A stretch of DNA of 64,000 bases from positions 620,001 through 684,000 of the forward strand of contig CDRNST010000096.1 of NCBI GenBank assembly GCA_977016875.1, read 5' to 3'. The notes below the pieces were generated by a model that made no database searches, was not told the origin of the DNA, and saw nothing but the letters and a program-made list of their open reading frames with translations. The position numbers were made by a program, and so were the translations under genes. This DNA comes from Pavona decussata. Lineage: Eukaryota. Position 1 is the stretch's first letter, and every line of letters starts with the position of its first letter. Below, in pieces: positions 3,131 through 63,551 of the stretch.

Positions 3131-3291
3131 TGCACGCAGACATGTTCTTGCAGTAGTAATGGACTGGCCTGCATCGAAGCTTGTAAGTGCATGACAACTG
3201 CCATAACCCCAACAAGGCCTGTGATTCTGATTCAGACGACTACGATGATCTGCGAGTCAATTATTAGATTATTAGACAGGATGAGAGTATA

Positions 3292-19672: not shown

Positions 19673-19692
19673 TTAAAACGTAAAAGAACTAA

Positions 19693-19921: not shown

Positions 19922-22714
19922 TAAGCATCATTTGGTCCACGACCGAAACGTAAGGGGCGTGTAAGCATGCATGCAAATCAGTTTGTGACGTCAAAGCGAG
20001 AATAGACCCATTCCCCTTCTGACTCGGTCGTGGACCAAATGATGCTTAGTTTTCGTGAGTTTTAAAGCCTATAAAAAGTCAAGATTGGATAAAAATGAAA
20101 ACAAAGGGCACAATGCGTTTCAAACACGTTTAAAGATTCTTTGTAGTAAAGATAATATTTTAGGGTTAGGTGCACTTTAAAGAAGATTAAAGTTCAGTAT
20201 TGATGTTTCCCATACGAAACACTCTTTAGCTTCAAAAACACCATAATACATGCATCAATGCTCCCAGCCTATTGCCTTTTGTTCAACCATCTCTCGTACT
20301 TTAAACGGTTTATGATCTGTTCTATCGTAAATTTCTCTAAGAATTCCTTGCCAGCCTTGTCGTTTTTGAGAATGTCTGACGGCGGGTTTGGATATGATTC
20401 CACTTCTAATTGTTGCTCCAAATAGCCAATACAGACTTTCTTTTTCCTCGCGGGAAAATATGTTCCTGCTAAGGTAACTTGAATTCGAAGGTGCTTCGAA
20501 TTCTGAAGAACTTGATAAGAAGCGACCCATTTTATCTAATAAAGTGTCTTGTTCTGTTGGTAGTTCAGCTGCACCAGCAGACTCCAGGCGGCTTTCACTG
20601 TGGATACCACGCCATTCACTGCGAACACTGTCGCATACTTTCTTAGCGTCTTCATTGCTAAGCGTGGGATGGCCTTTGAGTTTCTCTCTTACCACTGCCA
20701 TTGTGACAGACTTCTTGTTTATTTCTTCATGGAAATGTTCTCTTATGGCTTCTATTTCTTGCTTGTTCCACTTGGTTTGCCCCTCTTTTGTACCTTTGGT
20801 ACTAATAGGATTTTCCTCGTTAACGTTAGTTATCGAAGTGACTTCTTTTGATGCTTTATTGGCTGCTCGCATGATTGCGGGAAGGTGTGAGGCTGCTTTT
20901 ATGCGCGATTGTTGTTTTTCCTGCAGCTTGTAGTACCTTTGCGCTGCCGACTCTTTATGTGCCATTAGATCAGCGAGTTGCCCTTTTATGTCTTGGTGGT
21001 TAGTGTGTACAGCAGTCACGGCAGACTTTCAGATCAGGGTTGAACTAATATGTCCCTCTACGCCTGCTTTTTTCCAAGCGGCATTAATTGCAATTGATAT
21101 CTGGCCTGATGCGAGGCTTGCTCCACTCCATGACAATATCACAGCATAGTCATCATCTTTGCTTTGACTTACTACACTTCTAACTTTAGCTACAAACACT
21201 TTCAGGTAGCCAAACAACGTAGGAGACAGCACCACCTGTGCAGGGCCATGTGAGTCTGCAGTCTTGTGCTTCTTCACACTAATGATGTAATTTCCTTCAC
21301 TTTGCTTTGCTTTGTTGAACTCACCCATGGTCATGTTGGCTAAGACGCCCAATCTATGGGCATTCGCTACTGTTATTTGAGTTAGGATGAAATCTCGAAT
21401 TAGTGTGTACTCTGCTTGGTTAACTTGAAGGCTGTGAGCCCCACCAAGTTGACCAATGAGGGAGATTGCCTTTCGCGTTGCTTCACTCTGTTTAAATTTA
21501 GCAAGCATTTCAGGTGATACCAAGTTAGAAAGATCTTCATCCTGTTTCTCTAGATGCCTGCGTTGACTATCTTTCTTGTAAGATGACGACCACAAGCGGG
21601 CCTTGTCGTCGATTAAGGTAATGGTAGCATCGTCCACATTCACGCCTTCAGGACGCTCTGTTAAGCTAAAACTGCAGAAATATCTTAGACTTAACAGGTA
21701 TGATTTAATTGTGTCCGACTTGTAGGTATTTTCTGCATGTTTTTTTAAGAACGTGTCGGGAATAAGTTTCTTGTCAAATAGTGACGCCACATCTTTCTCC
21801 TGATCAATAACACCTAGCATCTTGTCTAACTGTGAAGCATGTTGCTTTGATATCTTCTCAGGCTTCCTTCCACCATCAGCTGTCTGCAGCCAGCTGGCGA
21901 AAGAACAAAAAACTCCCTTGCTAGTTTCCGCAGTGCCAGCACTTCCACCTTCACTTTGTGATTCACTGTCAGATTTGCCTTCATAGCCACAGTTATCAGT
22001 AGTATCACTGCTACTCTCTGACCCTTCTTCTCCGCTAACTTCTCCTTTGTCTTCTTGAACACTAATTCTTACTGCACTGTCACTGTCACTTTGGTTACTG
22101 AGCCTTTTCTCAGCTTCGTCAACTGTTTTTGAAACTCGTGCTGACGCCATTTTTTTATTGGTTGAGCTTCCTTCAATGTTGCGTTGTATTCCAAGGAGCC
22201 CTTCTTCATTCCCTTGTGTACTTCTTTTAATTGGTAGGACAACCGCTTTACTACTGAGCAACAGCCTGGAATAGGACACTTGTGGTGGTAATGATAATCT
22301 TTCCACTCTTTTGCCTTTCCGTTTTCCACGACCTCTGAAGAAAAGCTTTCTCTCATTCTAAAATGGGATGTCACTTTTTGAGCTTTATCGCGTGACCACT
22401 TATGAACATCTCTCAAATGGCGAGGAGGATCAACTACCCGCGACTTACATCCTTTTAAAGGGCAAATACGCTTTTTCCTGGGTTTAAAAGACACCTGATG
22501 AGACTTTTTCTTTCCTTTAACAGCATTGTCGTTCTCAGTTGTCGGATTGGATTTCTTATTTCCCTTTATATTACTGTTTTTGTGGGATGCCTGGTGAGAT
22601 TCCTTCTCTTTTGTAAACTCACTATTGTTGTTATCAACTTCTCCATTAGCATTTTTAAGTTTTTCGCCGGCGTCACTGTTACTGGGAGTCCAGCCAGTGC
22701 TAATTACCACCTCC

Positions 22715-23161
22715 TGAATAGGCGCCCAAAAGGTGAGGCCTATCCCAATCGATATGAATTTGACGAAGTTTTGTTTCAGACGAAATTGACCAAGAAGGCT
22801 TGGATATCTTCCGAAAACTCCGTTTTATTCTGCAAATAATACAAATCACTAAGGTCACGCGGGCCGCCCGATTCACGGTGAAAATCCAAAAATAACAACA
22901 CAAATGTACGGAAATCACAGCAAATCACTAATAAACTTGACAACACTTCTTACCTAGTATCGACAATTAGCGAACGATCCAAGGTGGACAAAAAAGGCGG
23001 AAGAAAAAGGGGCTTCCAAAAACACGAGTGACTAACACAGGCGACGATCACAGAGATTGAATTTCGTTATTGCGTTAGTAATCAAATTTCTAGGGTACGT
23101 CAAAGGTCCTCAAAGGGAAGGCCGCTGAGCGGAAAGTGGGTGTTGAGCGTGGGCCTCAACA
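22715..23161 (-). repeat. 3' LTR of BEL/Pao element 2
   Basis: TG...CA, direct repeat of 33333-33779. Confidence 0.97.
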
Positions 23162-23272
23162 TGCTCCCCCCTTTGAACAAGCTAAACTTATACTAGCGTT
23201 CAACAAAAACATATTATGAATATAGCTCAAAACAGAGTTCAATGTTCAGGGTTCACTTCGGGCTGTTCGTGG

Positions 23273-33332: not shown

Positions 33333-33779
33333 TGAATAGGCGCCCAAAAGGTGAGGCCTATCCCAATCGATATGAATTTGACGAAGTTTTGTTTCAGACG
33401 AAATTGACCAAGAAGGCTTGGATATCTTCCGAAAACTCCGTTTTATTCTGCAAATAATACAAATCACTAAGGTCACGCGGGCCGCCCGATTCACGGTGAA
33501 AATCCAAAAATAACAACACAAATGTACGGAAATCACAGCAAATCACTAATAAACTTGACAACACTTCTTACCTAGTATCGACAATTAGCGAACGATCCAA
33601 GGTGGACAAAAAAGGCGGAAGAAAAAGGGGCTTCCAAAAACACGAGTGACTAACACAGGCGACGATCACAGAGATTGAATTTCGTTATTGCGTTAGTAAT
33701 CAAATTTCTAGGGTACGTCAAAGGTCCTCAAAGGGAAGGCCGCTGAGCGGAAAGTGGGTGTTGAGCGTGGGCCTCAACA
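33333..33779 (-). repeat. 5' LTR of BEL/Pao element 2
   Basis: Direct repeat of 22715-23161, followed by TSD CCTCC. Confidence 0.97.
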
Positions 33780-34854
33780 CCTCCTGAGAACAAAGATCAT
33801 CTGAATCTCTGCTGCCAGGCAAAAAATACTCAACGTCATAATCCTCTTCATCACAAGCTTCATGCTGTGTAATCAGCTCTGCCCTTGCCCATTCATTTCT
33901 CTTGCCTTCCAATTTTCTTCTGCACTGCAATTTCAGCAAAATAATTTGTGTGCTGTCACTAAGACACGTATGTGGCCTCACCTCCTAAGAAATATTTTGC
34001 CAGTAGGTAGTGACCGCATTCAAGTGATACATATTGAAGTTGATGAAAATAAGTTTCCAGTTACGTGAGGATATTGTAGATAAACGGAACATTAGAAACT
34101 TGCAGTTCCCTTACCATAAACCTTTACTTCTTTCAATCAAAATGTTGCTGCACGGTATGGGGTGGCTTGATGCAATGTTATAATTAATGTTTCATTGCTC
34201 GTTCAACTAGTAATTGATTTGTTAAACAACACAGATTGTCAACGGACACTTTGAACTGTACTGAATGGGAAACATTGAAACAGGGATCCGTTTTCATTAT
34301 CGATCGCTCAAGCCATTTCCGCTGCGCGCTGCGACTTTCAGCCCTATAGAAAGATATGCGATCGTTCCGGCCCTTCACGGTCAGTTATTTTCTAAGAAGA
34401 TTAATACCTGCAGGTGCATACACCTGAACTAGATATTTGTTATTTTCACGGCCTTAAAAAACGCGTCATGATAAAGTAATTATTATTCAGTGCCTCTCTG
34501 AGCACCATCTTAACGGCAGTGTAAAGGGCGACTTTTCTTTTGATATTTTAAAACAAGCGGGCTTTAAAAGAAATATATAGTGACTAAAGCTTTCGTCACC
34601 AACAACGCTGGATACGCCCTTTCAAGAATGAATGAGAAATGGGGTTAATTTGCTATAAACAATGAACGCGCATTAACAAGGAAATATCTCGTTCGTATCA
34701 ATGCCTGAAACAGCAGTTGGCACATTATGAAAGCAAGAATCACAATCAAGGACAAGAAGACAGCAAAAGAATGTAAGAAAAACGAAAAAAAGTAAAAGTT
34801 GCATCATGACTCAAACTTGACTCCGGCTCAAACTTTACTCGTGCTACGAGTAAC

Positions 34855-39450: not shown

Positions 39451-42400
39451 CTAGATCTTCTTGAGACCCCTATGAACACATCTTTCATATTTAATTCGAT
39501 TCACTATAGTGTCCACTGAGACCTTCTCTAACATATCCCTTCCCCAGCTTTTTTTCTCAAGAGTCTCTTTAATACGTGGTTTCGAGATTGGGGCAGATGT
39601 CACAATCATTTCCTTGAAAGTGTTCCTTACTTTTACCAGTACAGTTGAGGTAAATACATTTTTCACGCTGCTTGTCACAGTTGGAGGAATAATGTCACTG
39701 GTGTCGGCTTGGTCCTCCAGGGTTCTCTGGACTCGCTGTTCCAGTGTCTCTTGTTCAGAGGGGAGATCTAAAGGCTCTATTGCAGTCTCTTGTTCGTACC
39801 GCCACTGTGAACGAACTTTGTCCAACACCCGTTTAGGACTCTCATTCTGGAGCTCTGGATGACTAGATAGTTTTGATCTCACAATCTCTAAGGAGACAGA
39901 TTTTTGGGCAATTTCTTCTTGAAAAACGTCTCGAACCAAATTTTCTTTTGCAGGAGACCATGAGACCTTTGACGTTTTTGACTGACACTCCTTTGGAGAC
40001 GGGACAACTGAGATTCCTTCAGGATCACTTTCCTTCTTTTGTTTCTCTCCACGCATGACACATCTCAGTTGTCTTGAGGCCTTAACGGAAGATTTCGACT
40101 TCTCGTTTAGCTTGTAATAATGCCTAGCAGTAGCCACATCATGAGCCATTAAATCAGCTAAATCACTGTGGGTCTCACTACTATTGGTTGTGCAGTGTAC
40201 TCCTGACACTGCTGACTTTCGCAGTATGGTTGTATGTATGGTACCACCAATGTCCGCTTTTTTCCAAACGGATTTCATCGCCTTGCTTATTTGGCTCGAG
40301 GCCAGACTTTCCCCATTCCAAGACAGAAAAACATGATGATCATTGTCATTTGTGGCGCCTGAAACGCGGTAGCGAACTTCTGTGACAAAGATTTGTAACC
40401 ACCGACATTTTCTGGCTCAGAACAATTCGGGCATGTCCATGGCTGTACAATGTCTTATGGTCTTTTACAAGGATCACACTGTCATCTCCCTCTGTTTTCA
40501 TTTTTTTGAACTCTCCCATTTTCATGTTTCCAGATCTGTTAGCGTTGTCGATTGAAATTTCGACAATCAAAAAGTCTCTAAGCAAAGTGTACTGACCCTG
40601 TGATATGTCTATGTTGTGCGCGCCTGACAATTTTCCTAATAGACAGATTGCATCCCTGGCGGCCTTACTTCTTTCGAACTCCTTTATCTGCTCTAGTGAA
40701 ATGAGTGCAAATCCTCCTCCATCTTCTCCCAATGTCGTTTCGCGCCGCTACGACTAAATGAAGTAGACCATCTTGCTACCTTTTCCCTCAGCGCTATAAC
40801 CTTCTCCTTTGTTGTACTTTCGCCCAAGTCAGTGGTCAGGGAAAAGGAATAAAAGTGGCGCAAGCTCATCAGATAAGATTGTGTTGTTTTGGGATGGTAT
40901 TGCTTTTTGGCGTAGCCTTCCAGAAACTTCTTATTTATTACCTGATCGTCATATAACGAGGACACCTCCATCTTTTCATCGATGATGCTTAAAAGCTTCA
41001 ACATTTTCTTGTAATGCTGCTCAGTTGTCTTCGTGTCCAGCTGCCCTCCATCTGCTGACTGAAGCCACGCCTTAAAGTCCTTTAACACCTCATGTGCATG
41101 GACATTTCCACTGACAGTTTCCGATGTGTCTTCATTCTCATTGTTTTCTTCATCGCTGTCTGGAAGGACTATACAAGGTACTGTTTGGCTGCAATGTTCA
41201 GAAACTGAAAGTCGATCTGATTCATCTTGAAATTTGTTACGACAATGGAGCCTTTTCTGGTGAATAGGTACACGATGGGAGTCCCGAACACGCTTCCCTG
41301 CTTCCTTGGAAAGGGCTTTTTTCACCTCATCAGGAGACAATTTATGAACCTTACGCAGATGCGGAGGTAGCCATTTTACTAATGCTGTACATCCTTGTAA
41401 GGGGCAGTAATGATAGTCTTTTGATCCTTTGCTTTTACTAGCCTCTTCTTCTGTTTGCTTTTTCTTCTTCGGAGCTTTCTTTGGATGCGAAAAAGAATAA
41501 GTTTTTCTCATGCCATAACGCACTAGTGCTGTCCTTGCATGTATTCGCGACCACCCATGGACGTCTTGCAGGTGCCTAGGTATGTGAACAACTTTAGACT
41601 TGCAGTAAATTATGGGACAGCGCCGGCGTTTCCAGGTGCCTCCACTTCCACTTTGCTTGCCCATGTTGTTATCTTCACAGTTGGAATCCTACAGAAAAAG
41701 TAATTATAATTTAACTTGGATACTCTGATATGTGGTTTTTGCAGGAGAAATTCCATGAAATTAAAGTCTAGCAGAAATAAACTTTTATGATGTATATGAA
41801 TTATAGCATAAGTGTATTATAATAGTCTAATACTCAATGGAAGACAAAAAACATTTTTAAGAAGCAAAATTAATAGTAGCAACGTGTGTGTAGGTTTACA
41901 AGGGGTGGGTGCTCAGACTCATGTGTTTGAGGGCTATTGAGTGCATTTTAAACCACTTTTCAATACTTGTCTTTGCTTTTACAATGTAAATAAAAAAAAG
42001 GAATGGATGGATGGATTGATGAATATTAAACAGCCTTAAAATCAGAGACGAGGCTCTTCTCTGAAAGACACTGGTTTCTCTTACCTTAGAAGCTGAGTTT
42101 CCATCATCTTTCATCACCTCATTGCTTCTCGTTCCATCGCTATCACTTTCCTCAACTTCTTCCTTTGGTTTATCACTCTCATTCTCAGAAACTTCAGTCT
42201 CATCATTTCCGGTCTCCTCTTCATCATCGTACTCATCATCATCAGAATCAGCTGAGTCAGACTTATCAGAGCCCCCATCCTAAACAGTCCAAAAAAAAAT
42301 TAATATATATATTTGTAGCATTTATTATGATAAAAGCAAGTCTGGTCAATTCATGATAATTGGATACAAACAAACAATTATTTACATGCACAAAAACACC

Positions 42401-47691: not shown

Positions 47692-47833
47692 NNNNNNNNN
47701 NNNNNNNNNNNNNNNNNNNNNNNNNNNNNNNNNNNNNNNNNNNNNNNNNNNNNNNNNNNNNNNNNNNNNNNNNNNNNNNNNNNNNNNNNNNNNNNNNNNN
47801 NNNNNNNNNNNNNNNNNNNNNNNNNNNNNNNNN
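47692..47833. other. Assembly gap (142 N) at the predicted unit A/B junction
   Basis: N run flanked on the left by inverted GTGCCCTA and on the right by forward GGGCACTTTT repeats. Confidence 0.99.
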
Positions 47834-47837
47834 CTGT

Positions 47838-47970
47838 CCAGGGACTTTTGTCACATGGGGCACTTTTGCAACATATCGTAGGGCACTTTTTCCACATTAC
47901 GGCACTTTGGCAACGTGGGTTAGGGCACTTTTGTCACAATAGGGCGCTTTGGCAACGGGCATTTTGGCCA
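47838..47970 (+). repeat. Left subterminal repeat array of YR unit B
   Basis: ~7 copies of the (T)AGGGCACTTTTG(T/G)CAC/CAAC motif, ~19-23-bp spacing. Confidence 0.85.
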
Positions 47971-48984
47971 CTTAACAAAGACTCTTTATTGAGAATAACT
48001 AGAGACTTAGCTTGCCTATGTTTAAATACAGCACACCTTTTTCGAGGCTAGTGCCAGCATTCAGGTGCAATAATTCTTATGTTGAAATTTCCCATTATAT
48101 TTCTTTCAAAGGCAAATTAAAAATGAAAAGTATATGTGCTGGCCTGTTTACAGCTGCCTCCTTTCCTCAAACTGCATCTATCCATTTCATTTTATTATTT
48201 TTTAACAGCCATACTGAAGCTATATATTAACGTGTATAAGAAAAAAATAATTTAAATGCATATGACTTGTAAAAAACGTGAATCTTTTAAGGACACAACT
48301 TACTAAATGTTTTAAGCTAAATAAAATTTGAAAATCGCTGATTTATGCTCTAACGATTATGCTCTAACGATTTTGTATGCGCCTCGCGGTAAGTGCGACT
48401 CAGCGAAAATCACAACTCTGCGTCTCCTTTATTCTGGCTAAAGGCTAAGTACTACCACATAATATCCAGCGAATTTTACCCGACTGTCGTTTCTTACAGG
48501 ATTCCCCTGTTTCGAAGACTATTCTGTTTTTCCATGCGAAAAATTCCAAAAAGAAGGCTCATGGCTTAAACTTTTGGAAGACACAGTAAAATACGGCGCA
48601 AGTTATCGTATATGGGATCGTTTCATCTAGTTGGTGATGGCAATTAATTCTCCCTCCTAGGTTAAAAATAGATAACATATCATATTTCTTACTGTAGTGA
48701 TGGTAGACCGTGTTGTGATGGTAGACCGTCATAAAATGATACATAACACATGGAATGCTTTCACCCCTGACTGTATTTTATCGTTGGCCATTTATAACTA
48801 TTTAGGATTGACTACAAATGACATTAGTGCAAGTGTTTTGGTTTTATTGTGATCTTGCAAAAGTCACGCATTCTCGACGTGACATAACCAAATAGTGTGA
48901 CATTGTTTTCCCTCAGTCACAAAATAAAGCAAAGACTTGTGTTTAATACTTTGTGGCCTCATTCTCCCCTAGACAATTTTTTCT

Positions 48985-50061
48985 TTAGTATTTAGTACGG
49001 CCGCCTCTACTGTTTACAACTAAATCTAATCGCTTATACATTGACCCGATAGTATTGTCAATAATTTCTCTTCGCACCGAGTATAGCGTACTTTTCACTC
49101 GTTGTGCAAACTCTTGAAATGACTCAGATGTCAGATGTGATGTTATCGCTTGTCTCCTTAACTCACGCTTTACTACATTAAAAACATTCTCGATAGGATT
49201 TAAATCGCCACTGCGCTTAGGAATAGCAAATAATTTGCCCCCAACGTCTTTGACAGCTCGTCGTGCCTTTGCACAATTCAAAATAGGACAATTATCATGC
49301 ACAAATAACTTAGAACCTTGTTTACCGCTCTTTGTAAACATTTTCGGAAAATTTCTACGTACAAATGCAGAGAAGTAATCCCCATCCAGTTTATCATACT
49401 GTTCACAATAAATGACCCCTTTCCAATATGAGATAGCCACAATCATTTTCACAACTCTACCCCCGGAGCCCACATGCGAACCCTTGGCAGTGCACGAGAG
49501 TCCTTCATTCCGTTTACGCCAAACTTTCCCCTGAGGTGTTCTTGCATCGTCCAACGGATTGGTTTTGTGATAAAAACTGACCCCATCGAGGTAAAAACAA
49601 ATGCCATTTTGGAAAAAGTCTTCCGGGTAGGTCCTTTTAACCGTACGAGCAAATTGACGACGTTCACTGTAATCTTTGTCCGTTAAGATACCTTTTTTTC
49701 GAGCCTCCATGAAGCGATATCCCATCCGCTTTAACGTACGATTTACTGTCCACGAAGATACGTGATGTAACCCTGATTCAGCTCTTATTCGGTGGCATGA
49801 AAAATTCCCTTCTTGCTTGCGCAGCTTGTTGATATTTCGTTCAATAACCCTTTCCTCTCGTCCAGTTATTGCACGAGGCCTCCCGCGTGTCCCGCGTGAC
49901 TGTCTGTTCTTGTCGCAAGTGTTTGTGTTTAAACAGCGATAAACGGACGCCCAAGATATACCACAGAGATGTACTATTTCACGCACAGTTAAATCGCTTT
50001 GTAAACGAAGACATCTCACATACGCTTTCGTCTGTGCATCTATATGTCCGCGATAAACCAT
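48985..50061 (-). CDS. Tc1-family DD34E transposase, open reading frame intact
   Basis: N-terminal HTH, GRPR linker, FYLDG, FVHDN, SGDLNPIENV with 34 residues between D and E, terminal GGRTKY. No matched TIR pair found. Confidence 0.9.
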   Translation of the reverse strand: MVYRGHIDAQTKAYVRCLRLQSDLTVREIVHLCGISWASVYRCLNTNTCDKNRQSRGTRGRPRAITGREERVIERNINKLRKQEGNFSCHRIRAESGLHHVSSWTVNRTLKRMGYRFMEARKKGILTDKDYSERRQFARTVKRTYPEDFFQNGICFYLDGVSFYHKTNPLDDARTPQGKVWRKRNEGLSCTAKGSHVGSGGRVVKMIVAISYWKGVIYCEQYDKLDGDYFSAFVRRNFPKMFTKSGKQGSKLFVHDNCPILNCAKARRAVKDVGGKLFAIPKRSGDLNPIENVFNVVKRELRRQAITSHLTSESFQEFAQRVKSTLYSVRREIIDNTIGSMYKRLDLVVNSRGGRTKY

Positions 50062-50290
50062 TTTCTTTTACACAACGGAAGAAAACAAGAAACTCCGTAA
50101 CGTCACAAAGAGCGAATTGACAATGCCACGAATTCGAACGGCCTATTTAGCGCACTTCCACCCCAATTAGAACCCTAAAATGTCCAGTGATGTACTAAAT
50201 AGATGTTGCATTTTCCAAATTTAGGTCAACATCATTTGTACGTTCCTCCACATCCGAGAAAAGGGCCTGGATGTTCACCCCTAACTCAGA

Positions 50291-50554
50291 CAACTAGTTG
50301 CAAAAAGACTTGAGACACTGTAACATATTTGGCCTTAAATGAAGTTGCCGTGATCACGTGCTTTCCATTCCCCCTCCCCCCCTTATCAATGTTGTTAGCA
50401 ATGCAAGATGACGCTCAAAATTTGGAGGAAGAACTTTGTATGGAGGGGAGGGAGGGGGGTACTGTCATGTCTCACAGATTTATGAGCGGCAGCAATTTGA
50501 AGTGGTAAAGGGCGATTTTTGGTTGGAGTGTCTCACTATTTTTGCAACTGGTTG
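50291..50554. mobile_element. Tc1/mariner-type MITE
   Basis: TIR CAAC(T/C)AGTTGCAAAAA..TGAGACACT / AGTGTCTCA..TTTTTGCAACTGGTTG|TA. Confidence 0.75.
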
Positions 50555-51211
50555 TAGCTTACAACTGTTACATTGGAAATCTCGCTAACTTTTATAAACA
50601 TCAAGATCTAGTAATGTTCCTACTCTTACTGGAAGCAGATGTTGATTTAACTTAGTAGAGGGTCATGATGGTACCGGTATGTTTGTAGTACAAATAAAAA
50701 AAAAACGTACCTGCGATGTACGGTGGCTAACCATAGGCCATTTTTCATTGCATTACTAGCCCTGTAGTTCAAAAAGCTAAATCTTGAATCTAGTATGACC
50801 TAAGAAATCTAGGAATCTTTAGGTGGAATTAAGCTTGCAATTCATCTTTCGCTCGTATTTTAAACGATTGGTGATTTGCTTCAAGGTGAACATCTGTAGT
50901 ATCTCTCTTCCCTCTTCCTCTTTGCTTAGTAACCCGTGAACAACATTTTGGGAAATGACGCCTGATTTCACCACTTCACCACAAAACTGGAGTAAATACT
51001 TTCTGTGCTCATCAGTAAACATATTCTTACTCACATAGCTCGAGTTTGAGGGAGGGGCCATAGATGCGCTGCTGTCATCGCGTGAAAAGTACCGACACAT
51101 CTTGTTGTCTAAAGTGTCAATTTCTTTGGGCAATTCAGGAGAGGGCTGGTCGTCAGCCATCTCTGACATTTTGTGGCTGGTGTTGTTGCTGAAGCGCCAC
51201 TCACTAAGAAT

Positions 51212-52186
51212 AAATGATTTATTCCTACAAATCAAAACTGTACAATTACATATGTATGCAGACGATGGTCAACTCTACACCGCCGATATGGATCTGGTAC
51301 GGTGCGTCTCTCGCATGAGGTAAGCTCAGCAAATGCCTTGTACGAGATCAATGGAATGATAGCAAATCCCAGCAAACACCAAGGGATGATACTAGGAAAA
51401 ACTGACCATCAGTTTAATTTCTCAGTAAATGACTCAATGTAACTTTTCGGCGTTACAATTGATAAAGATCCTACATTTAAGCAACATGTGTCCTCTATAT
51501 GTAACAATCAGTTTAGCGTTATGACAAGGTTTGGCAAACTGATGTCTACTGAGACCATGCTCCGTCTTTATAAGGCATTTATACTTCCTCACTTTTATTA
51601 TTGTTCTATGGTGTGGCATTTCTCTAGTAAACAAGATTCTAATAAACTGGACCTATTAAACAAACGTATTCTTCGATTTATTTTCAAGGATTTTAACTCT
51701 GAGTACAATAATTTACTTAAAAAGGCAGGAACTGCAAACTTTAAGGACAAGCGTTTACAAAACATAATTCTAACTATTTTTAAATGTCTTCATTTTAAAA
51801 GATATGTTTCATTTACGCTCTAGCACCTATTTTTTAAGAGGACATAGTATAATCTGTTTGCCCAAACCACTGACCACTTCTTATGGTATCAATTCCTTTA
51901 GTTACTTGGCAGCAACATCGTGGAATTCTCTTCCTGACCATTACTGCACTATTTCTGATTTTACTTCTTTTCAACGACTGATATCTACTGGGAACAATAA
52001 TTTACTTAAAAGGGCAGGAACTGCAAACCTTTCTACATCATGATAATTTACAAGTTAGTTGTCTAGGTAGTAAGTTATCTTATTTGTTATATAGAATTAA
52101 CTTTTTATTATAATTATTTATCAATGTAGTTGGCTCGAAGATATTAGCACTTCAGTGCTACACTGTAAATTCGAGGGTAAATAAAT

Positions 52187-52218
<32 letters not shown>
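51212..52218 (+). mobile_element. 5'-truncated CR1/L2-type LINE with (ATTG)n tail
   Basis: INDL..LHMYADD, LYKAFILPHF.YC.VW, GINSFSY..WNSLP. AATAAA followed by an ATTG microsatellite at 52190-52218. Confidence 0.85.
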
Positions 52219-52219
<1 letters not shown>

Positions 52220-52284
52220 CTTGTCATACACCTTTCTCGAGTCTAGAAAACGGAGCTTAGGATTTCCTTGAATTTTGTCTTTAA

Positions 52285-52889
52285 AGTGCCCCTAACCCTT
52301 CAATTTGTTTTCTTTTGGTAGATTTCCATATGTGTGAAAAACTCATTTTCGAAATTTTTTTTTAGAAATATTGAATCCTTTTTATTTTACGAGCACTAAA
52401 AGTTACTGAAATTTTTAAATTTTTGCGCGCTTTCAGCCCCGCTGGACAAATGTTTGTCTCGTGGGCTCATTAGGAACGAGCCAATGAGAAGCGTCTGATG
52501 TTTGACACTTTCTTAGCTGTGACGTAAGAACAGGACACCAGAAGGATTCAGAAGGAATCTTATGCACGCTGATTCCTTTCTCTACATTTCGAGAGTTGCT
52601 GCATCCCAAAACCACACATTCTTTAACCATTTTCTCTGTTTACAATTGAAGCATTACCCCGAATCTTCAGATATTTTTGCACGATGTCCTTTTCTTACGT
52701 CACGCTCCATATTTGGCCGAGTGGGGGACTAATGCGAACGATAGGTGAAAATATTGACAAGACTGCCTTCACTTCTAGTGCTCGTAAAAAGAAAAAGATT
52801 CAATATTTCTCAAAAATTGTTTCGAAAATGAGTTCTTGAAAGATATGGAAATCTACCAAAAGAAAACAAATTGAAGGGTTAGGGGCACT
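52285..52889 (-). mobile_element. Kolobok non-autonomous element with THAP-domain stub
   Basis: TTAA TSD; first 46 bp of the TIR perfect (AGTGCCCCTAACCCTTCAATTTG...), imperfect to ~120 bp. ORF 52433-52630 begins MVKECVVLGCSN..GISVHKIP (THAP start). Confidence 0.9.
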
Positions 52890-55865
52890 TTAACGACTGT
52901 CATACTTTCCAATTTCGCTTTAATTTTCTCTGCAAAGAGATCTTTTAAGGCAATAACATCTTCTTTCCAGACTATACGTGCCTTGGATCCTACAGCACCT
53001 GAATCCTCACGGTCAATTTCCGGAACGTCGTCATCACAACTTGTGCTGGTGACTTGTGTATGTTGTACCGTTTTGTTTGCTTCAGATCTCATAATGTGAG
53101 GAAGCTTACTTGCCGCTTGTAGACACGCCTCTTGCTTCTCCTTTAGTCGATAACATGTCCAAGCGGTGGTCTCCTTATGCGCCATTAGATCAGCCAAATC
53201 TGATTTCATTTCTTCATGCATATGCTAATTGTGCACATTTGTGAAGGCAGACTTTCAAAATAAAGTTAAATCCAACACCTGGCTTCGTACTTCATTGATG
53301 AACTGACTTTCAAATATGTGAACAAACTTGATGGTGATAACACTGCGTGCGCTAGGCCATGAGTATCAGCAGTCTTATGGCTTTTGACACGTATCACGAA
53401 GCTACCCTTCGCTTTTTTTGCTTGACAGTATTCGTCAAGGGTCATATTGGATAACACACCAGATCGATGTGCATTTGCAATCATGAAATTTAGGAGAAGA
53501 AAATCTCTGACGAGAATGAAGATGGATTGATTAATTTGCAAAAATGCTCTCCACTTGAGTTGTTCTATATATGAAATAGTGCTCCATGCTGACTCCTGCG
53601 TTCAAACTCATTGACCACCTCAGGAGTTTCAAGGTTGACGAGATCGGTGCTCATCTTTCCTAGATGCCTCCGTTTACTGTCCTTTTTGTATGGCATAGAC
53701 CAAAGGCGTGCTTTCTCTCTGGCCCATTTGGCAGACAATAGCAGAACTGAAAACCACGCTGCTAGATTTCTCAGCAACCATGCACGTACGAACAGAAATG
53801 CCTTAAACTGAGAAGATAAGCTTTCACAGTTTCAGCTGTATACTTCTTTTCGGCGTCCTTCAAAAATGAGTCCCGAATTAGAGTCTTATCAAACAGTGAG
53901 CTCTGCTGCTTTTGGGGTCAATTATTTCCAGAATACGCAACACCTGTGACGCATGTTGCTTAGATAACTTTTTATCCTTTCTACACTTTTATCCTTTCTA
54001 CCACGAGGCTGCTTTTGGGTCCTATCATTTGAGACCTGAGAGTACAATCTGTCATGTGCAGTGTCACCAGTGAAAATTGACACCTTTGGAAAACAGTTAA
54101 ATCAACACTTCATAAAACGTGATGCTAATATTTTGAAAACGCGTTTTTGCTGTCATTATCCACACATTTGATGACAATTTGTTTGAAGCCTCCAGATTTG
54201 AAATACAACGAATGGCCAGAACACATGTTTATTTACCTGTTCTTTTCTTGATGTCTTCTCAAAAGCGGCTTCAAGTATGCCTCATGAAATGTCAGTCCAT
54301 GACGTCAGTTCAATGTTATGACCGTCTGTTACTGACACTATGCCAAAAATATCTCACTTTTCATTTATTGTTAATCATTGTCGACCAACACCAGCTTTTA
54401 CAAACTTTGAAGTACATCAAAACTATAATTTTCATAATCGTTGTCAGGAAAACACCCTTTTCTTCCTGGCTTGGTTTGAATAGCATTTAATTTTTATCAT
54501 TTGTCTGGGTTGTATGTATTGTTAAAATGCCTTGCACAGCAAAGGGTATTATTAAATTCTTATATGGTGTAAAGACATTTCGATTGACGTCTTTTGCTTG
54601 CTAAAGGTAACGATAGATTGTTAGGGGCTTAATCTAGAATAATGTAGGAGACGTGTTTGATTGCCCGTCTGATTAGCTCTTATTAAATACCGGATATAAA
54701 AGGGCGGAAAAAGAGCTGTAATATAGTTTTTTCAAGTTAAAAAGCTTTGAAGCTCAAGTAAATTTTTTCTGCCCACACGTACATCAACAATTGCGTCAAG
54801 GTTGGGACCGTTGTGAAAGCACTCTAAAACTTTTCCGAAAAAGCAGGATCAGCGATAAATTGCGATTAACTTCATAAAAACAAAATTAGGATTAACCACC
54901 TCCATGTAATAGTAGTGAGCAAAATTAGACTTTTCTGCAAAATCTTTTGAAGACGTTAATCCTTCTGTTTTTAAATAGGGCACTTTTGTCACGCGGACTA
55001 CCGGTAGATGCAAAAAGGCCGAGAACAGAAGAGTAATTTGTTTCTTGCAGTTTAATAAGATTTTAAAGCTTGAGTAATATCTCAGCTCTTAGAGTACTTT
55101 AAGAATTGCGTCAAGTTTGGGACCGTTGCAAAAGTGCCCAAAAATGTTTTCGAAAGAATAAGCCAGTAAATCTGCCATAAAAAGCCCACAAATTAATTTG
55201 GAATTAACGGTGTCCATGTAAATATATTGGGACAATTTGAATTTTTTTGAAAAGCGTTCGAAGACACACTGATTCTTCCGTTTTTTGCTCCGTTTCTAAA
55301 TAGGGCACTTTTGTAACTCAGACTAACGGTAGAAGCCCACAATAAAAAAAGAAATTGAAAATAAAATAATGAATGGCTATTTCCTACAAAGTTTGATTTG
55401 GAAAATAAGGCTGGAGTGTTGCTGTAGATGTTTCAACCCTTTTGATCTCGAAAGTTTGCCTATTTTAAAAATTATCGACCAAAGCGTCAAAATTCATGTT
55501 GCGTTGATTTTTGATGTCAAGAAAAGGTCACAAGTCTATGAAGATGCATATGAACTCGTGCGATTTTTGACTCAAAATTTTTGTGAAGAGATTAAATTTT
55601 GGAAAGCGAGAGAAAGCAAAGAAAAAGTCTAAAAGACTGGATATCATGTTAGCCACGGAAAAACGAACGAAAATTGTGTTAATTTGGGCTTTCAAGGCGT
55701 AGGGCACTTTTGCTGCCGGTATGGAAGAAGAAAAAATCGTATGTAATTTAACTTCAATGGTGAGCAGGTATGGTTATAATACATTGAATTTTCTTCATTT
55801 ATTCGTCAGGAAAATGTCAACCAACGCATTTTGTTGAAGTTATAAACGAGAGACTTGAAAGTGAT

Positions 55866-55917
55866 AAAAGTGCCCGACTTTCAATATTTAGAGAGAGAGA
55901 GATTGAAGGGGACTTTT
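55866..55917. other. Right-end/left-end junction of two YR units (att-site-like)
   Basis: AAAAGTGCCC-gact-TTCAAT-attt-(AG)6-ATTGAA-GGGGACTTTT: inverted repeats around an AG spacer. Confidence 0.75.
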
Positions 55918-58900
55918 GTAACGCCAAATCAGGCACTTATGTAATGTTAGGGCACTTATGTAGCGTTCGAGCACTTTCCTTATTAAGTCTTTAGCATGCT
56001 GATGGACACTTATTAAACTTTCGGTGAGCCATGTTTTACTTGTCAAAATTGATCTTATGAACTTATCTTGCGTGTTTACAAATTATGAAGCGTAGCATTC
56101 AACAAAAGGTCCACGTATACTTAAAGTACCGGTGTGCTGTCGTGTTTACAACATTTGTAACTAGTTTGGGACACTAGTTGTTACTATTACCCGTAAATAT
56201 AGGTCCAATTTATAAACAGGTTCGCTTTACATATAGGGACGTTTTTACAATGACCATCCGTAACGCCGCTATGTGTAAAGTGCCCCTATATTTAAGGTAA
56301 CATGAACTAGGGGCTCCCTGATCTAAAAAAAAAAAAAGCAGTCGTGGTTTTCAATATTTAGACTGGTGGTACTCTTTCCGAATTTAAGCTGCTTAAATAG
56401 ATTAATACCCATGGCTTATGTGTGTGAAACCACTGATTTATTTTCCCGAGTCGCCTATATATATATTGTAAGAAAACCGCATGTTGCCTCCATACGTATG
56501 TAAAGTACGTAACCTAAAAGCTATTCTGGCTACTACACTTGATGTGCTTTCGTAACTATCGCACATAATTAATGTTTCCTGTTTGCTACTGAAGAGAAGA
56601 GATTTTGCCAAAAAAAACCCTAGGACTATACCTAACCCTATCACATCTCTAAATCGATAATCATGAAGAATGTCTTTGCATTTGTGTACATAAATATTAA
56701 GTGACACAAGTTGCATTTAAAAAATTAAGGCGCCTGCATTTATGGTCCTGAATCCCAAGTGCTGGCATACATATGAGCTGGCCCCACCTTTGGCCATTCG
56801 TGTTTTTTTAATAATGTCGTGAATGCCCCACGGTGGGGCCAGCTCACCACACACCAAAATATGGACCGAGACTCGCATTACAAAAGTACGGAGAGGCCTT
56901 GAATTCTAGGCAAAGGGATTAAGCATGCTTGGGTTGGAGTCGGCAAGGCTCAGGTTAACTTAAATCAAATCAAAATCGTCCTTATATGTAAAGCCCCTTT
57001 GTGTTAAGCCCCATTCGCGAATCACTAGTCTACTTTCCTTTAAATCATGAAACCACGTATATTTTTAGACCATTTCCCTGATCACGTATTTACTATACAT
57101 TCTTGAAGAAAGTCTCAATATCTCAGGCGAGCTCACAGTAACGCGTAGGGCCAGAGAGAACATGCCTCCATACAAGATTAATCTTTGGCTTTATGATCTA
57201 GGACATTTGTCAAGTTTGGTTTACTACCGTAAATTGATTTTGAGTACGCAATTTTTCTTTAGCGGTTTTCATGTGTCACGCTATGGTTCTGTTTGTATCA
57301 CACGTCACTCTGAACATATAACCCTAACCTGCTATCACCTGCTAGAAAAAGGACGCCTGTCCACTGGTTAGCTTTACCCCTTTACCATCCTGCATCTCAC
57401 CTAACATCACTAACCGCAGGAAATGGTTTTCATTTACGAGCCGGCAAATTCAAGGTTAAGAAGTTAAATCAATTCCCAGTTTCAAAACACAATTCTATAC
57501 CGCCAAAACAATGCCTCCTTTGAGGGTCCGCATCCTGCAGTTATATCTTTGTGACATCCACATTCAAACAAACTTGCGGTGAAAGATTGCATGACAATCC
57601 CAAACAGCTTCTGCGTAGGTTACCTCGAGTGGGGGATTTAAGTCCACATGGAAATTTTTCCACATTCACCCATTACTCCCCATCAGACGTGATTAGTGGA
57701 TTTAAGATAGAATAATCCAATGCCCAAGATAGAACAAAAAAAACCTCCAATAGCGTTACCCAATCCATGCTATTGTGCGATTATTGCCACTCAATTTGAT
57801 GATAATCGTTTTTTGGTATTTAGTAGTAAATTAACATCTTATTTAAATACTTGCCTTCATCAACAGTTCATTTAAAATACTTTCATAAACATCTCATTTA
57901 TGGCAAGAAGCCCAATTTCTTTTCTAAAATAGTTAAACATCTCTTCATCAATGTTTCGTTTAAAATATTTTCAAAATGAAACAAATAAATATCTCATAGT
58001 AGAAAGTCCAACTTATTTAAAATACTTTCTTTCATGAACGCTTCATTGAAATTATTTTAAAAAACATGTCATTTATAGCAAAAAACCTATCTTATCAGAA
58101 ATAATTTCAGAAACATCTCATTTACAGCAAGGAACCTAAGCGTGTGACCACTTTAATTAAATAAGTCTAGTTCTTTTATGCATGCAGACCATCTGAACAT
58201 AAGGCAGGGACAGCTAATTTTGGTTTATGATTGGATGGCACGCCCACACAAAAGAATGAGAGTTAACTAAAGGTCACCCTCTTTGGTCCCTAAATTGCTG
58301 TAAAATACTAATACAATTTAAACTGTTCACAATGCTACAAAAAAATGTGGCCATACACGTAAAAGAGAAACATCTTCTAAATGGGCCAGGTAACCTTGGC
58401 TAGCCCAGTTTCCTATATCTCCCCTCGATAAAATTTATTTTGTACAAATTTTGTTGTGTTCATATAAGGAGGAAAACTAGCGCAGTTGCCGAGTAACTGG
58501 GCTGGAAATTTTACCATATGAACACTCCAGCAAGGTTATTAGGATGACAGTTATTGTTCAACATAAACATGCATTTCTACAAAATAATGGTAAGCCAGTG
58601 TTAGATTACAGTGAACTCTCTCTAACTCTCCCAACTAGTTCCATAAGGAATGTATGGCCAATGAAAATAATTTTTATCTTGACATTAGGACTTACTACAA
58701 CATCAAATTCTCCCAACTAGTCCTATAAGGAATGTACTGCCAAGATCAAAAAACCTCAATCAATGTTTTCAGTTTCGATTCTTCCTCAAGATTACATCAT
58801 TTGTTTAAATTTGTATCAGAGTGAAGACAATCTAAGGTTTGGTTGACTTGCATTTACATACTAACCCTTCCTCTATACTAGCCTATTTCTTGCTGAGGAA

Positions 58901-58927
58901 TGGCAAAATAAAGCATGTTAGCTTCCT

Positions 58928-59338
58928 TGTGGATTCCCCTACATTTTTTGTGGATTTCCCTACCTTTTGTGGACTTCCCTACTTTCTTTGTGGATTCCCC
59001 TACATTTTTTGTGGATTTTGCTACCCTTTGTGGATTTCCCTACTTTAGCCTTTAAGGAGGCTGTGGATTTCCCTACCTTGATTTTTTAAGTTGAAAATGT
59101 TGGCTTTTTATGCGGGGTTTGCCTTCTAAATCGTTCTAATCTATTGTTAAGGAGACTCTATTTATGAATAATGCTGTTAGAAGGTTTAAAAAGATTTAAT
59201 TTTTTTTTAAGTTTTTGGCCGCCATCTTGGATTGGCGGCCATGTCGGATTTCTGTTGTTAGTCATAGTCTCTAAAACTTACTTGTGGATTTCCCTACTTT
59301 TTTGTGGATTACCCTACCTTTTTTGTGGATTTCCCTAC
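58928..59338. repeat. Ten copies of TGTGGATTTCCCTAC, probable subterminal array of YR element 5
   Basis: Copies at 58928, 58949, 58968, 58989, 59010, 59029, 59062, 59283, 59303 and 59324; mostly 19-21-bp spacing. Confidence 0.85.
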
Positions 59339-60339
59339 ATTTGAGAAGTTGACTTTTGTCTTAGTTTAACTTTCAATTACTCATGTGCATTACGTTGTTT
59401 CTTATTAATTTTTTTTTCATGCACGCATTGATGCATTGACTACAGTTTGCACGTAGTTTTTTAATTTGTTTTAAAAATGTTTTAAAGCTATAATTTTTTT
59501 AGGACACGACTGTTTTACTGGTACTTTAGACTGCTTCTTAAGGTATGTATCATACTTTTGAACTTTTTCACTTTGAAAGGATTTATTCCTTTAAGCTAAA
59601 ATTTGGGGGAGGTACAGGATGAAGAAAGGGAATGTCAGGAAATATAAATATCTTTTATAACAACTGCGTTTATCGGGTCTTTTACAACTTTTATTTATTT
59701 CTTTAAGACTTTGATGCCGACCTTAAAATTGGTTATGGTTAAACTATAGCCAATCACCGAGCTTTAAAGCTGGCAAGATGTCACTTGCATGGTTTACTAT
59801 TGAAATAGTTATCTATGGAATAAGTGAAAGAAATAGTTTACAGTTTACGTTCGATCGTTCAACTCTGACATTTGAAAGTTAGGCTTGGTTTTTCGTCAAA
59901 AGGGTTGACTATAGACTTGGCTTGAAACTTTAAACTCTCCAAAACCTTCATTTTAGTTTGAAAACATTGAGAAATGATATTTGGCAATGTTTCAAGAGTG
60001 ATTTTGGTTTCCTGGTCCCCCCCTTGTACTTCATTGACGAATAACAAGGGTATTATCCTGAGACTGAGATAGTTGAGACACCTGCTTACTTCGTGGGGCA
60101 ATCCCCGGGGGTTGAGTACCCCAGCTCATGTTTGATCCCAGACGAAGTTTAACAGTCACCATATCACAGCCTTTCAGGGGGTATCATCGGGTAACCAACC
60201 CGACTCATTGTCGCCAGGATAGCATCATCTGTTGATGAAATTAGCTCACAAGTCTTGAGGGGTGTCATGGGGGAACCGTCCCCACTCATTGTTGCCAGGA
60301 TTGTATCTTGTTGATACGGTTCCCTGGTCCCCCCCTTCC

Positions 60340-60580
60340 CTTTTTTTTGTATTTTTTTTTTAATTTTTTCAGTCACCGTCCAGTTTTTTTTTTTTTTTTT
60401 TTTTTGTATTTTTTTTTTTGCCCAGTCACCGTCCAGGGTTTTTTTTTTTTTATTTTTTTTTCCAGTCACCGGCCAGTCTTTTTTTTTCTATTTTTTTCAG
60501 TCACCGTCCAGGTTTTGTTTTGTTATTTTTCCAGTCACCATCCAGGCTTCTTTTAACAACTTTTGTTTTAAGTCACTGTT
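60340..60580. repeat. CAGTCACCGTCCAG units separated by poly-T tracts
   Basis: 5 clear copies plus 1 degenerate copy, directly 3' of the YR5 stop codon. Confidence 0.85.
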
Positions 60581-63551
60581 CAATTTGTCTTGCGCTTGAA
60601 CAAGTTCTTGACCTTTTCGTAGGTTCGGTGGACTCCATTTCGTGTCACAATATCTTTCAGGTCCTCAGTGGTTTTCAAGATATCCAGTATGATTGCCTTA
60701 CATGGACATCTTGTGTGTGCTTGAAAGGCTTCCTCTAAGGCACTTTCGTCCTGTCTTGACCAGGACTGGCGTTTACTAGAAACAGTGAAGATTGTAGATG
60801 TGGTCTCAACCCAATCACTTGTTTGGGCTGTAGCATCAGCGTCAGGGAGTGACTCCAAGTTATCTTTCATATGTTTCTTTTGAAGATATTTCACTCGTTT
60901 ATAGACCTTATTTACAATGATGTCATCCTCTACGAATTCAATCAGGCTTGCGCACTCACTCATCTGGCGCTTTGTTTCGACAATTGAGAGTGGCGCATTT
61001 TGGGTGATGATGTGACCGAAGAGAAGATCAATGGCGTCTAACTGCTCAGAGAGACCTTTCCACTCGGGCACTTTGTTGGGCGAGGATGCTTTCTGTGGTG
61101 AAGGTGTCTTTGTTGGCAGTGTGTCCTTCAGGCCAATGTTGCTGGTTAAGACTTCATGTCCTTTTGCGGCCATGTCGCCGAGATTTTGCATCATGTAATA
61201 AGTTTCCGCTGTTTTGGTTGAGTGGCACATTAGCCTATGTGCACTTGCCTTAGCAGCAGGATCTGCCTGGCTCAGCTGCGACGCATGCATCTTCCTAAGT
61301 CGTGTACTGGTTACATTTTCCTTACCCGTTGCCTTACGCCACCATTCCATGATTCGTTTCCCGATCGTGCCTGGGTTGAATGCCGTCCCCGAGTCGGTGA
61401 CAAAGAGTGCTTCTTCGTCTTTCTTGGCAAACAGTGGGCGTACTTTCTGGACATAGACGTCTAAATTAGATTTTAAATTCTTTGACAAGGTCAAAGGGGC
61501 AGGGCCGGCTTTGCTATTGCTATTCTTATGCCTACTGACATACATGATAAATTTCTCTTGCCTGGCCTCTAGTCGTTGGAAATCTCGTAGGCGCGCAGTC
61601 TCGAACGGACCTGGCAATTAAAAAGTCCCTTATCACAAGGAATTCTTTTCGGCTAGGCTTGTAAGTTTGTGCTTTCATTAAATATGTGCTGGCTGTCTTT
61701 GCAATTGCTGAATCAACCATTGAGCTGGTGACTGCTGGATTAACAGCATTGACTTGATCTTCAAGGATCTGCTCCCACCGGTCGTGCGCATAAAGTTGAT
61801 TAACAGATGTACCCATAGCCACGAATCGAGGTATCACTGCTGTGATTCTGTCGATTGTGTTCTGATGTAACTTGGGGAATCCCTTCACCTTGTGTTGGTG
61901 GTAATCAACAACAAACTCCAAGAAGCGCACCAGTGATCGCAGGGCTGCTCTAATAGTGCCTGGTCGGGACTTTTTTGCATCTGAAGAGAGGCTTTGCCCA
62001 GGAATTCCACACTTCCAGACCACCGTTAGAGATCACACACTCGAGGGTACTGTCTTGGCTGTCGATACTGTCGTGGATTCTTCGCACATTCTGCGCATGG
62101 AGAATTGCGTCCCCTTCCTTCTTACACCCTCCTATGATGTGTTGGAGATGACTGTAATATTTGATGATCAGCTCATCGATCAAGGACCCAGCCTTCCCTT
62201 CCCTGTAATACTCTTTCCATGTGGAAAAGTCAGCCTCGTCATCGCTTTCACTCGACTCATCTTCCTCATAGTCGGAATCACTGCTTCTCTCATCCTCTTC
62301 GTCTTCACTGTCATCAACCATTTTCTCTTCTCCAGAGCCTTCCTCACTCTTTTCTTCATCACTGCCATCCTCTTCTTCACTCTTGCTGGAGTCTCCTTGA
62401 TCATTAGCATCACTTCCATCAGCACTTGCATCATCATGGTCTGGCTCCGGTTCTTCACTTGCTACATCGTCATGGTCTGCCTCTGGTTCTTTCCTTGCAT
62501 GAGCAGTAGTCATAAATGATTTAAGGCCTTTTAGAGGAGTTGCTGGTATTGTGTTAGGGTTAGGCTCGAAATCCTCATCGGATGATTCGGACGGGAGAAG
62601 TTCCTCTGCAAGCAGCTCCAGAGGACTCTTTTTGGGACCCTTTTCTTCGTCGTCACTGTCAGATTCTTGTTCCACTTGTTTTAAGCGCTTGTATGACTTG
62701 GGGCTGGGAAGAAATGAGCCTTTCCGCTTTTCATGAATTATTTTCGTGTCCCACAACATCTCTGAGGTCCTCCCATAGAATGGCCGAGCCAACCTTAGGA
62801 CCATCTGATACTCATCACTGTCCTTTGCTAGTCCATGGACTTTTCTTAGGTGTTTTGATAAGTACAAGACAACGCTGTCACATTTAGGGCAGATCTCCTT
62901 GACACGTAGGTAGACACGATTCTCTCCACCTTTAGTTTTGGTCTTGAATCCGCCACCCTTGATCTTATTCCCGTGCCTTGCCATCTCCATCAACGGTTTG
63001 ATTCTGATTTCTGGAAGAAATTCGTTTTTGTTCACGTGTAACGCTTTCAGGTGTCTGGAAAGGTTACACACCGTTTTTTGGCAGATCGGGCAAACTCGAC
63101 TTGCGTAGTGCTTCTCTTTCGCGACTTTGGCTGTTTGTGTTTTCGTACCCGTTTTTTTCATTTGGGTTGTTTTTTTGGCATTTTTGTCAGAAGAACCAGC
63201 AACCTCTTCAACAACTCTAACAGAAGGTCTAGCAACCTCTTCTACAACTCTAACAGAAGGTCCAGCAACCTCTTCTACAACTGTAACAGAAGGTCCAGCA
63301 ACATCATCAACAACCCTAACAGGAGGTTCAGCAACCTTATCAACAACTCTAGCAACAGAAGGCCCAACAACATCATCAACAACCTCGGTTACATTCTTAT
63401 CTGTCGCACTTATAACAGCAGGCGTAGCAGAAACCTCATAACAAACAACAGTAGACACTTCATCATCATCATCTGCTTTGGCAGCATCGCCACTAGGCCC
63501 TGACTGATCTTCACCTATATCTAATCGCAGCGAGACTTTCATCTCATCCAT
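60580..63551 (-). pseudogene. Tyrosine recombinase copy 5 (divergent subfamily, intronless, two frameshifts)
   Basis: CPICQ..RHL..LH and CPKC..KHLRKVH fingers, acidic tract, GG.KK..H..NVRR, RDFLIA, RHKN..GPA, TRLRKMH, LMCHSTKTAETYY, C-terminal Myb-like repeat WSRQDE. Frame changes near 61985 and 61612. Confidence 0.9.
63190..63385 (-). repeat. 33-bp coding minisatellite (VVEEVAGPSVR-like, ~6 units)
   Basis: Repeated 11-aa unit near the start of the YR5 ORF. Confidence 0.9.

Follow-up and report, generated by a model that had tools for sequence, protein, structure and literature searches.

An inverted-motif site around an AG microsatellite in Pavona decussata, probably the boundary of two dead Crypton-type tyrosine recombinase elements

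This study revealed that a short site built around an AG microsatellite, at positions 55866-55917 of the window (the whole stretch of 64,000 nucleotides of Pavona decussata DNA that was analysed), is very probably the boundary between two neighbouring dead transposons of the Crypton type. These two tyrosine recombinase (YR) elements, here called Ed and Ee, would have inserted independently of each other into one (CT)n.(AG)n microsatellite, both pointing the same way. The alignments show that the left arm of the site is where Ed has its left end, and that the right arm is the right end of Ee, which belongs to a different lineage. The AG run between Ed and Ee is what is left of the target microsatellite. 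The original prediction had regarded the site as a core site of the att/loxP type, with inverted half-sites around an asymmetric spacer. These half-sites were found to be genuine ends of tyrosine-recombinase elements, and the notion that they form a free-standing core site had to be given up. The positions of the features are collected in Table 1.

With regard to the sequence itself, the predicted layout proved to be exact and to recur far beyond chance. It consists of AAAAGTGCCC (55866-55875), GACT (55876-55879) and TTCAAT (55880-55885), followed by the linker and the AG run listed in Table 1 and then by ATTGAA (55902-55907) and GGGGACTTTT (55908-55917). TTCAAT and ATTGAA are perfectly complementary (6/6), and the outer arms of 15 nt, 55861-55875 and 55908-55922, are 80% complementary. 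The symmetry is imperfect, as GACT forms a 4-nt insert between the sub-sites of the left arm and the right arm carries no such insert. Runs of at least four AG units occur only twice on the plus strand of the window, at 10464-10479 and at 55890-55901. Both are preceded by ..AAAAGT..TTTCAAT and a linker of 4-13 nt, and both are followed, 0-4 nt on, by ATTGAAGGG(C/G)ACTTTTGT and then by an array of repeats of about 21 bp. The motif ATTGAAGGG has only three occurrences on the plus strand of the window, and the core of the repeat, AGGGCACYT, was found in 12 copies where 0.84 would be expected, always on the plus strand. A chance palindrome at 55866-55917 was ruled out, because the association is seen at both AG runs of the window and at 18 of 19 ends of the family.

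Table 1 Positions of the two junctions, the element ends and the recombinase genes in the window
Feature	Position	Strand	Remarks
YR copy a, fragment	2199-2995	-	beside nested BEL/Pao LTR element (3291-8265)
Second junction of the 55866-55917 type	10445-10504	-	TTCAAT, 13 nt, (AG)8, GTAG, then ATTGAAGGGCACTTTTGTCAC
Right-end iteron array of element Eb	10484-10697	-	spacings 23/42/19/42/23
YR copy b, carried by Eb	20272-22710	-	TGA stop; frameshift near 22069-22306
YR copy c	39469-41664	-	frameshifted, in three pieces; weak Phage_int_SAM_1 match
N gap	47692-47833		left-end-type motif in opposite orientation (ACAGATGTGCCCT at 47678) just before; right-end iteron array just after
Element Ed, degraded YR element	47834-55885	-	right-end iteron array 47834-47979, directly after the N gap
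YR copy d, remnants in Ed	50840-53982	-	50840-51211, 52889-53266 and 53305-53982; 35-63% amino-acid identity to P0016
Left terminus (YR sense) of Ed	55866-55885	-	minus-strand reading ATTGAAAGTCGGGCACTTTT
ATTT linker, microsatellite to Ed terminus	55886-55889		variable among left ends
(AG)6, (CT)6 on the YR-sense strand	55890-55901		target microsatellite remnant common to Ed and Ee
Right terminus of Ee	55902-55987	-	ATTGAAGGGGACTTTTGTAAC and further iterons, 19/23-bp spacing, core GGCACTT
Ee body, 3' non-coding part	55902-58915	-	74-86% identical to L003 12216-16412
Fifth, distant YR gene	60580-63551	-	21.6% identity to P0016; PF00589 E = 4e-4

The left arm was assigned from the complete element in L002, to which the left end of Ed aligns. 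The homology begins exactly at ATTGAA, position 420 of L002 on the YR-sense strand, and 55866-55885 is therefore the left terminus of Ed. A terminus of the same form, ATTGAAA(G/A)T(A/C)GGGCA, is also present in L122 and L123. At other left ends, the linker between microsatellite and terminus reads AACG, CCCTGAAT or GGAG, or is a stretch of 13 nt. The right arm aligns to L003. As the Ee body resembles the part of L003 that lies downstream of its YR gene, a separate element has its right terminus from 55902 on. With this terminus, the right ends of L014, L086, L085, L034, L017 and L059 share 75-82% identity. The match between Ee and L003 resumes at 60061-60146 (L003 8899-8984). The recombinase gene is missing from this copy of Ee, which is thus deleted or non-autonomous, and no left end was found for it between 60.1 and 60.3 kb. 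Where its recombinase gene would be expected, there are two arrays of a repeat of about 20 bp, TTGTGGATTTCCCTAC, at 58923-59046 and 59278-59342. These arrays have no homology to L003 and may be iterons of yet another element.

The other junction in the window, at 10445-10504, has a degenerate left arm, which reads ATTGAAAAACTTTTG on the YR-sense strand and aligns no further. The left end of the element Ea showed no alignment to other left ends past ATTGAA..ACTTTTG. A third element junction with its microsatellite is probably hidden by the N gap at 47692-47833. The boundary between Eb and a following element Ec was not found in the interval of 33.8-39.4 kb that was searched.

Self-comparison and tblastn with an intact relative revealed at least five YR genes in the window, all of them on the minus strand. 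The four close copies, a to d, are all degraded. In copy b, the TGA falls at the second catalytic arginine (STLI*KSAV, compared with STLFRKSAV in the family), and copy d is split by a MITE (52277-52897) and by other insertions. A Tc1/mariner transposase (48985-50061) is likewise nested in Ed, as a foreign insertion. The presence of at least five units of the same orientation within 64 kb could suggest local tandem duplication or unequal crossing-over of one ancestral unit, the junction then being a repeat boundary. However, the proteins of the units share no more than 31-49% identity, and yet the units have kept long open frames, each of them is closer to sequences on other contigs than to its neighbours (52-63% to P0016 for copy d, up to 86% to P0010 for copy b), and the non-coding parts of adjacent units do not align. 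Such a duplication is therefore highly improbable, and the low mutual identity, combined with closer relatives on other contigs, argues for repeated independent insertions of different lineages.

The protein of the family is a predicted tyrosine recombinase, an assignment that draws on both sequence and modelled structure. A piece of 425 residues from copy b (21032-22306) has coral homologues, with a best E of 4.8e-149. Its 75 matches comprise the window's own protein and 74 relatives, 16 of the matches carry PF00589, and the named relatives come from the stony corals Desmophyllum pertusum, Montipora foliosa and M. capricornis. Full-length relatives match PF00589 at E = 2.5e-5 to 2e-3. A Pfam search with the window's own YR ORF pieces gave weak SAM-like matches only, and a profile search against PDB sequences gave nothing significant, the XerA match having E = 0.3. 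The AlphaFold model of P0016 (711 residues) has a mean pLDDT of 71.7, with high values over residues 140-495. When this model was compared with the PDB by Foldseek, the best 50 matches were all tyrosine recombinases, including Cre (E = 1e-4), XerA, lambda Int and XerH, and the alignments of about 370 columns span the core-binding and catalytic domains. R327, K357, R440, H464 and Y473 are invariant in an alignment of 12 sequences of the family, and T or N stands in place of the histidine of HxxR. The corresponding set in Cre is R173, K201, R292, W315 and Y324. Upstream of the recombinase domains are two Cys/His motifs, CPxxGCxSxVxxLxxHLxxVH, and the tyrosine of the catalytic region is followed by a conserved C-terminal domain of about 200 residues. 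Uninterrupted natural ORFs exist in the family (P0016, P0059 and P0063), so that the "resurrection" of a consensus YR is unnecessary.

The complete L002 element (420-12092) contains one long ORF only, which is the recombinase, and neither a reverse transcriptase nor a DDE ORF. With a single recombinase ORF and no reverse transcriptase, it is a Crypton-type DNA element and not a retroelement of the DIRS/Ngaro type, which was thereby ruled out. A cut-and-paste TIR transposon of the DDE type was also rejected, since the complete element has no DDE ORF and its flanks are CT runs of variable length. In agreement with a Crypton, CT repeats border the L002 element on either side and are present at both junctions of the window, and there are neither LTRs nor long TIRs. 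Where the window does have reverse transcriptase ORFs, these are parts of nested BEL/Pao elements that have LTRs of their own.

The ends of the family were surveyed on the YR-sense strand in independent coral genome and metagenome contigs. CT adjoins 13 of 14 right ends and all five left ends, and AG adjoins none. Element orientation tracks the CT/AG strand without exception, and the asymmetry of the stretch does explain, as had been proposed, why all units point in the same direction. On the left side of L002, (CT)5 TTAT (CT)4 AACG is followed by ATTGAAAATAGGGCAT; on its right side, AAAAGTGCCCTTCAAT is followed by CTTTCTCTTT(CT)4, so that CT repeats flank both ends. The right end of L001, GCGCCCTTTAAT, is followed by (CT)15. 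A scan of metagenomes with a terminus pattern that did not include CT gave 116 matches, most of them due to chance and set aside by a repeat-motif filter; genuine ends were recognised by extra copies of the motif upstream. Seven contigs with family ends remained, six of them independent (L079 and L017 are duplicates), and every one of these ends leads into a CT microsatellite or into CT-rich DNA. One left end in L122, one right end in L124 and one end of each kind in L123 all adjoin CT runs (4/4). The single exception is the right end in L003, where the first CT does not continue into a run. L004, a distant lineage with 35% protein identity, has nine copies of an unrelated iteron of 21 bp, which end directly at (CT)18.

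The core of the family motif, AAGTGCCCT, occurs once and inverted at the left end, and as an array at the right end. Right ends carry 4-12 copies of the iteron of about 21 bp, spaced alternately by 19 and 23 bp; two units would thus make 42 bp, or about four helical turns. The expectation that other family ends adjoin an AG repeat and carry TTCAAT/ATTGAA was borne out in its first part, as they adjoin AG/CT, and for most ends in its second. The hexamers are common and not universal: L123 and L124, which form one sublineage, lack TTCAAT and end in TTTCTTCTGG. The inverted AAAGTGCC/GGCACTTT motif is a more general feature of the ends than the hexamers are. The sequence of the iterons varies with the YR lineage, being TGTGCAGCATATGTCACATGT in L004 (20403-20636) and GGTTACCAATGTGCCACA in L123 (3570-3813), and the architecture, an array ending at (CT)n, is the same in both. 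This comparison suggests that the protein and its sites co-evolve, the iteron sequence shifting with the lineage and the architecture being kept.

One could also suppose that the CT/AG run is a part of the element, a terminal simple repeat that is made or carried by it, rather than its target, in which case it would have no bearing on target choice. No empty site was seen in the sequences examined, and in one subfamily the constant part of the element reaches into the repeat, as TTCAAT is followed by a constant CTGC at three loci. Nevertheless, CT runs flank complete elements on both sides, these runs differ in length (4 to 21 units) and pass into degenerate CT-rich flanks, the same flank is found in lineages with unrelated iterons, and microsatellite-specific insertion of cnidarian Cryptons is mentioned in a passage of PMC8869645. 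It is thus quite improbable that the run belongs to the element, and we continue to regard it as the target. Given the variable linker of 4-13 nt at left ends and the constant TTCAAT-CTGC, the exact point of crossover cannot be placed. Such variation of the linker is unexpected for a precise site-specific crossover, unless the linker is a lineage-specific sequence of the element. In L085 (149-225), the microsatellite at the right end reads (CT)13 AAAT (CT)4 AAAT (CT)7 AAAT (CT)3. In the window, too, AAAT (55886-55889, minus strand) joins (CT)6 to the left terminus. The AAAT units in L085 could be footprints of earlier elements, or the flank could only be a compound microsatellite.

Junctions that join a right end to a left end across a CT run were found three times, twice in the window and once, independently, in L123. 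This recurrence could mean that resident ends bind the recombinase and that occupied microsatellites are preferred. Together with the inverted arms around a strand-asymmetric CT/AG stretch, it is what could be expected if 55866-55917 were itself a functional core site of the att/loxP type, either as a preserved circle junction or as the internal junction of a dimer that was integrated as a unit. The form of the site is also the one that the Crypton model predicts for a circle junction, and to this extent it equals the junction of an excised circle, as had been proposed. Its arms, however, come from two different elements of different lineages (L002-like for Ed, L003-like for Ee). Moreover, the inverted motifs are separated by 16 bp at 55886-55901, by 33 bp at 10451-10483 and by 46 bp between AAAGTGCC and GGCACTTT in L123, whereas the overlap region of tyrosine recombinases is typically 6-8 bp (PMC3212892). 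The right ends of L123 and L124 are devoid of TTCAAT, every recombinase copy of the array that was checked is broken, and outside the window 10 of 11 right ends stand alone, with no left end beside them. A functional core site at this position is therefore unlikely. Spacers of such differing lengths, set against an overlap of 6-8 bp, indicate that the genomic junction is a passive boundary rather than a core site of fixed geometry.

For two independent insertions into one microsatellite, the Crypton circle model of Goodwin et al. (2003), which PMC3212892 and PMC9977147 summarise, offers a mechanism. The recombinase would cross over between the flanking CT repeats and excise the element as a circle, in whose junction the right end, (CT)k and the left end would follow each other. 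Integration would then proceed by strand exchange between the CT stretch of the circle and any genomic (CT)n, and the orientation would be fixed by the strand asymmetry of CT/AG. Each insertion would split the microsatellite into two usable targets, and later insertions into these could build up head-to-tail arrays. The array of iterons may offer accessory sites to which the zinc-finger or core-binding domains bind. A circle junction, like an empty site, was not seen among the sequences examined, and we infer the excision as a circle and the crossover within CT from the model. An active Crypton that ends in CACCG does target CAYCG and is cleanly excised (PMC9977147).

It is conceivable, though rather doubtful, that the CT repeat is itself the crossover region of a true attP-like circle junction. 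By analogy with lambda, the iterons would then act like arm-type sites, a complex of several protomers would capture a bare (CT)n without binding arms, and occupied microsatellites would be preferred targets. If so, this preference would explain the arrays of unrelated lineages, and intact copies of the P0016, P0059 and P0063 types would represent a eukaryotic integrase with a set orientation and, as its target, a simple repeat that is common in animal genomes.

The animal genome from which the window comes is rich in repeats, and several further ones were noted in the window. In the left part of Ed, a tandem duplication of about 320 bp (54698-55336, 67% identity) holds one iteron, AGGGCACTTTTGT, in each duplicate, at 54977 and 55302. 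The two BEL/Pao LTR retrotransposons, at 3291-8265 and from 22715 to about 33800, carry Peptidase_A17, RVT_1, rve and DUF5641. The larger one has its LTRs at 22715-23180 and 33333-33798, and its insertion point lies 4 bp past the 5' end of the recombinase ORF of copy b. It apparently has a second reverse transcriptase ORF, with DUF6451. An element of 7 kb at 13089-20189 has terminal inverted repeats of 127 bp and an ORF of 483 residues (14630-16081) without a clear family. The MITE of 620 bp inside YR copy d is a derivative of it, and both were rejected as members of the YR family, as they form a separate nested family. The tip of the terminal inverted repeats, TTAAAGTGCCCCTAACCC, holds a motif almost identical to the core of the Crypton iteron, AAGTGCCCTAA; this likeness may be a coincidence or reflect a common binding motif. 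Just downstream of the C-terminus of the distant YR gene lie five CCAGTCACCGTCCAGG repeats (60341-60564), in long T runs. This gene may represent a further Crypton lineage whose target is a different one, perhaps poly-A/T. The ORF 61950-63551, the N-terminal region of this gene, contains six tandem copies of a 33-bp repeat (63188-63385), which would encode a peptide repeat of 11 residues.

No class of eukaryotic DNA transposons is less well understood than the Cryptons, whose activity has been observed only in Chlamydomonas, where the active Crypton is CryptonF-1_cRei (PMC9977147). The site in the window is no more than a fossil, marking where two dead copies meet. The ends of the coral family are unusually legible, with fixed termini, iterons that vary with the lineage within a conserved architecture and a strict, strand-specific association with (CT)n. 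Given these ends and the intact natural genes, the model of circles and site-specific recombination becomes directly testable. The build-up of same-oriented arrays of unrelated copies at one microsatellite also finds an explanation.

A new eukaryotic pair of recombinase and site had been proposed, and the pair found here is not new in kind. Some families of CryptonV, a YR-encoding lineage of cnidarians (Repbase Reports 2012), insert specifically in microsatellites, according to the passage of PMC8869645 that cites them (ref. 33 therein). With CryptonV, the coral elements share the cnidarian host, a tyrosine recombinase without reverse transcriptase and microsatellite-specific insertion. A microsatellite-targeting cnidarian Crypton is thus already known as a kind, and it is by host, enzyme and target, as given in that passage, that we liken the coral family to CryptonV. 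As in Cryptons in general, the recombinase is the only enzyme encoded, and the model is one of circle excision and site-specific integration. In contrast to Cryptons in general, the "direct repeat" of the coral family is the microsatellite, and its protein has the two N-terminal Cys/His motifs and the conserved C-terminal domain described above. For animal Cryptons, the published description gives neither terminal repeats of any kind nor recognisable ends (PMC3212892; Kojima & Jurka 2011), whereas the coral family has imperfect inverted termini of about 20 bp and a long array of iterons on one side. These legible termini and the iteron array go beyond the published descriptions that were found.

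The coral recombinase resembles Cre and lambda Int in its predicted fold and in keeping R-K-R-H-Y with a Cre-like spacing, and it differs from them in the T or N that replaces the histidine of HxxR. Like loxP and att sites, the ends of the family present inverted motifs, with predicted binding, that flank an asymmetric stretch, and the additional sites arrayed on one side are reminiscent of attP with its arm-type sites. Unlike in loxP and att, the spacer is long and variable, and the arms in the window come from two elements. Endogenous nimaviruses, which have telomere-repeat-specific or rDNA-specific tyrosine recombinases (PMC10871703), are also comparable, being eukaryotic mobile DNA with a YR that has a zinc-binding and a SAM-like N-terminal domain, insertion into a simple repeat and a fixed orientation. 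Those are giant viral genomes of crustaceans that target (TAACC)n or 28S rDNA (PMC10871703), whereas the coral elements measure about 8-12 kb, carry a single gene and target (CT)n.
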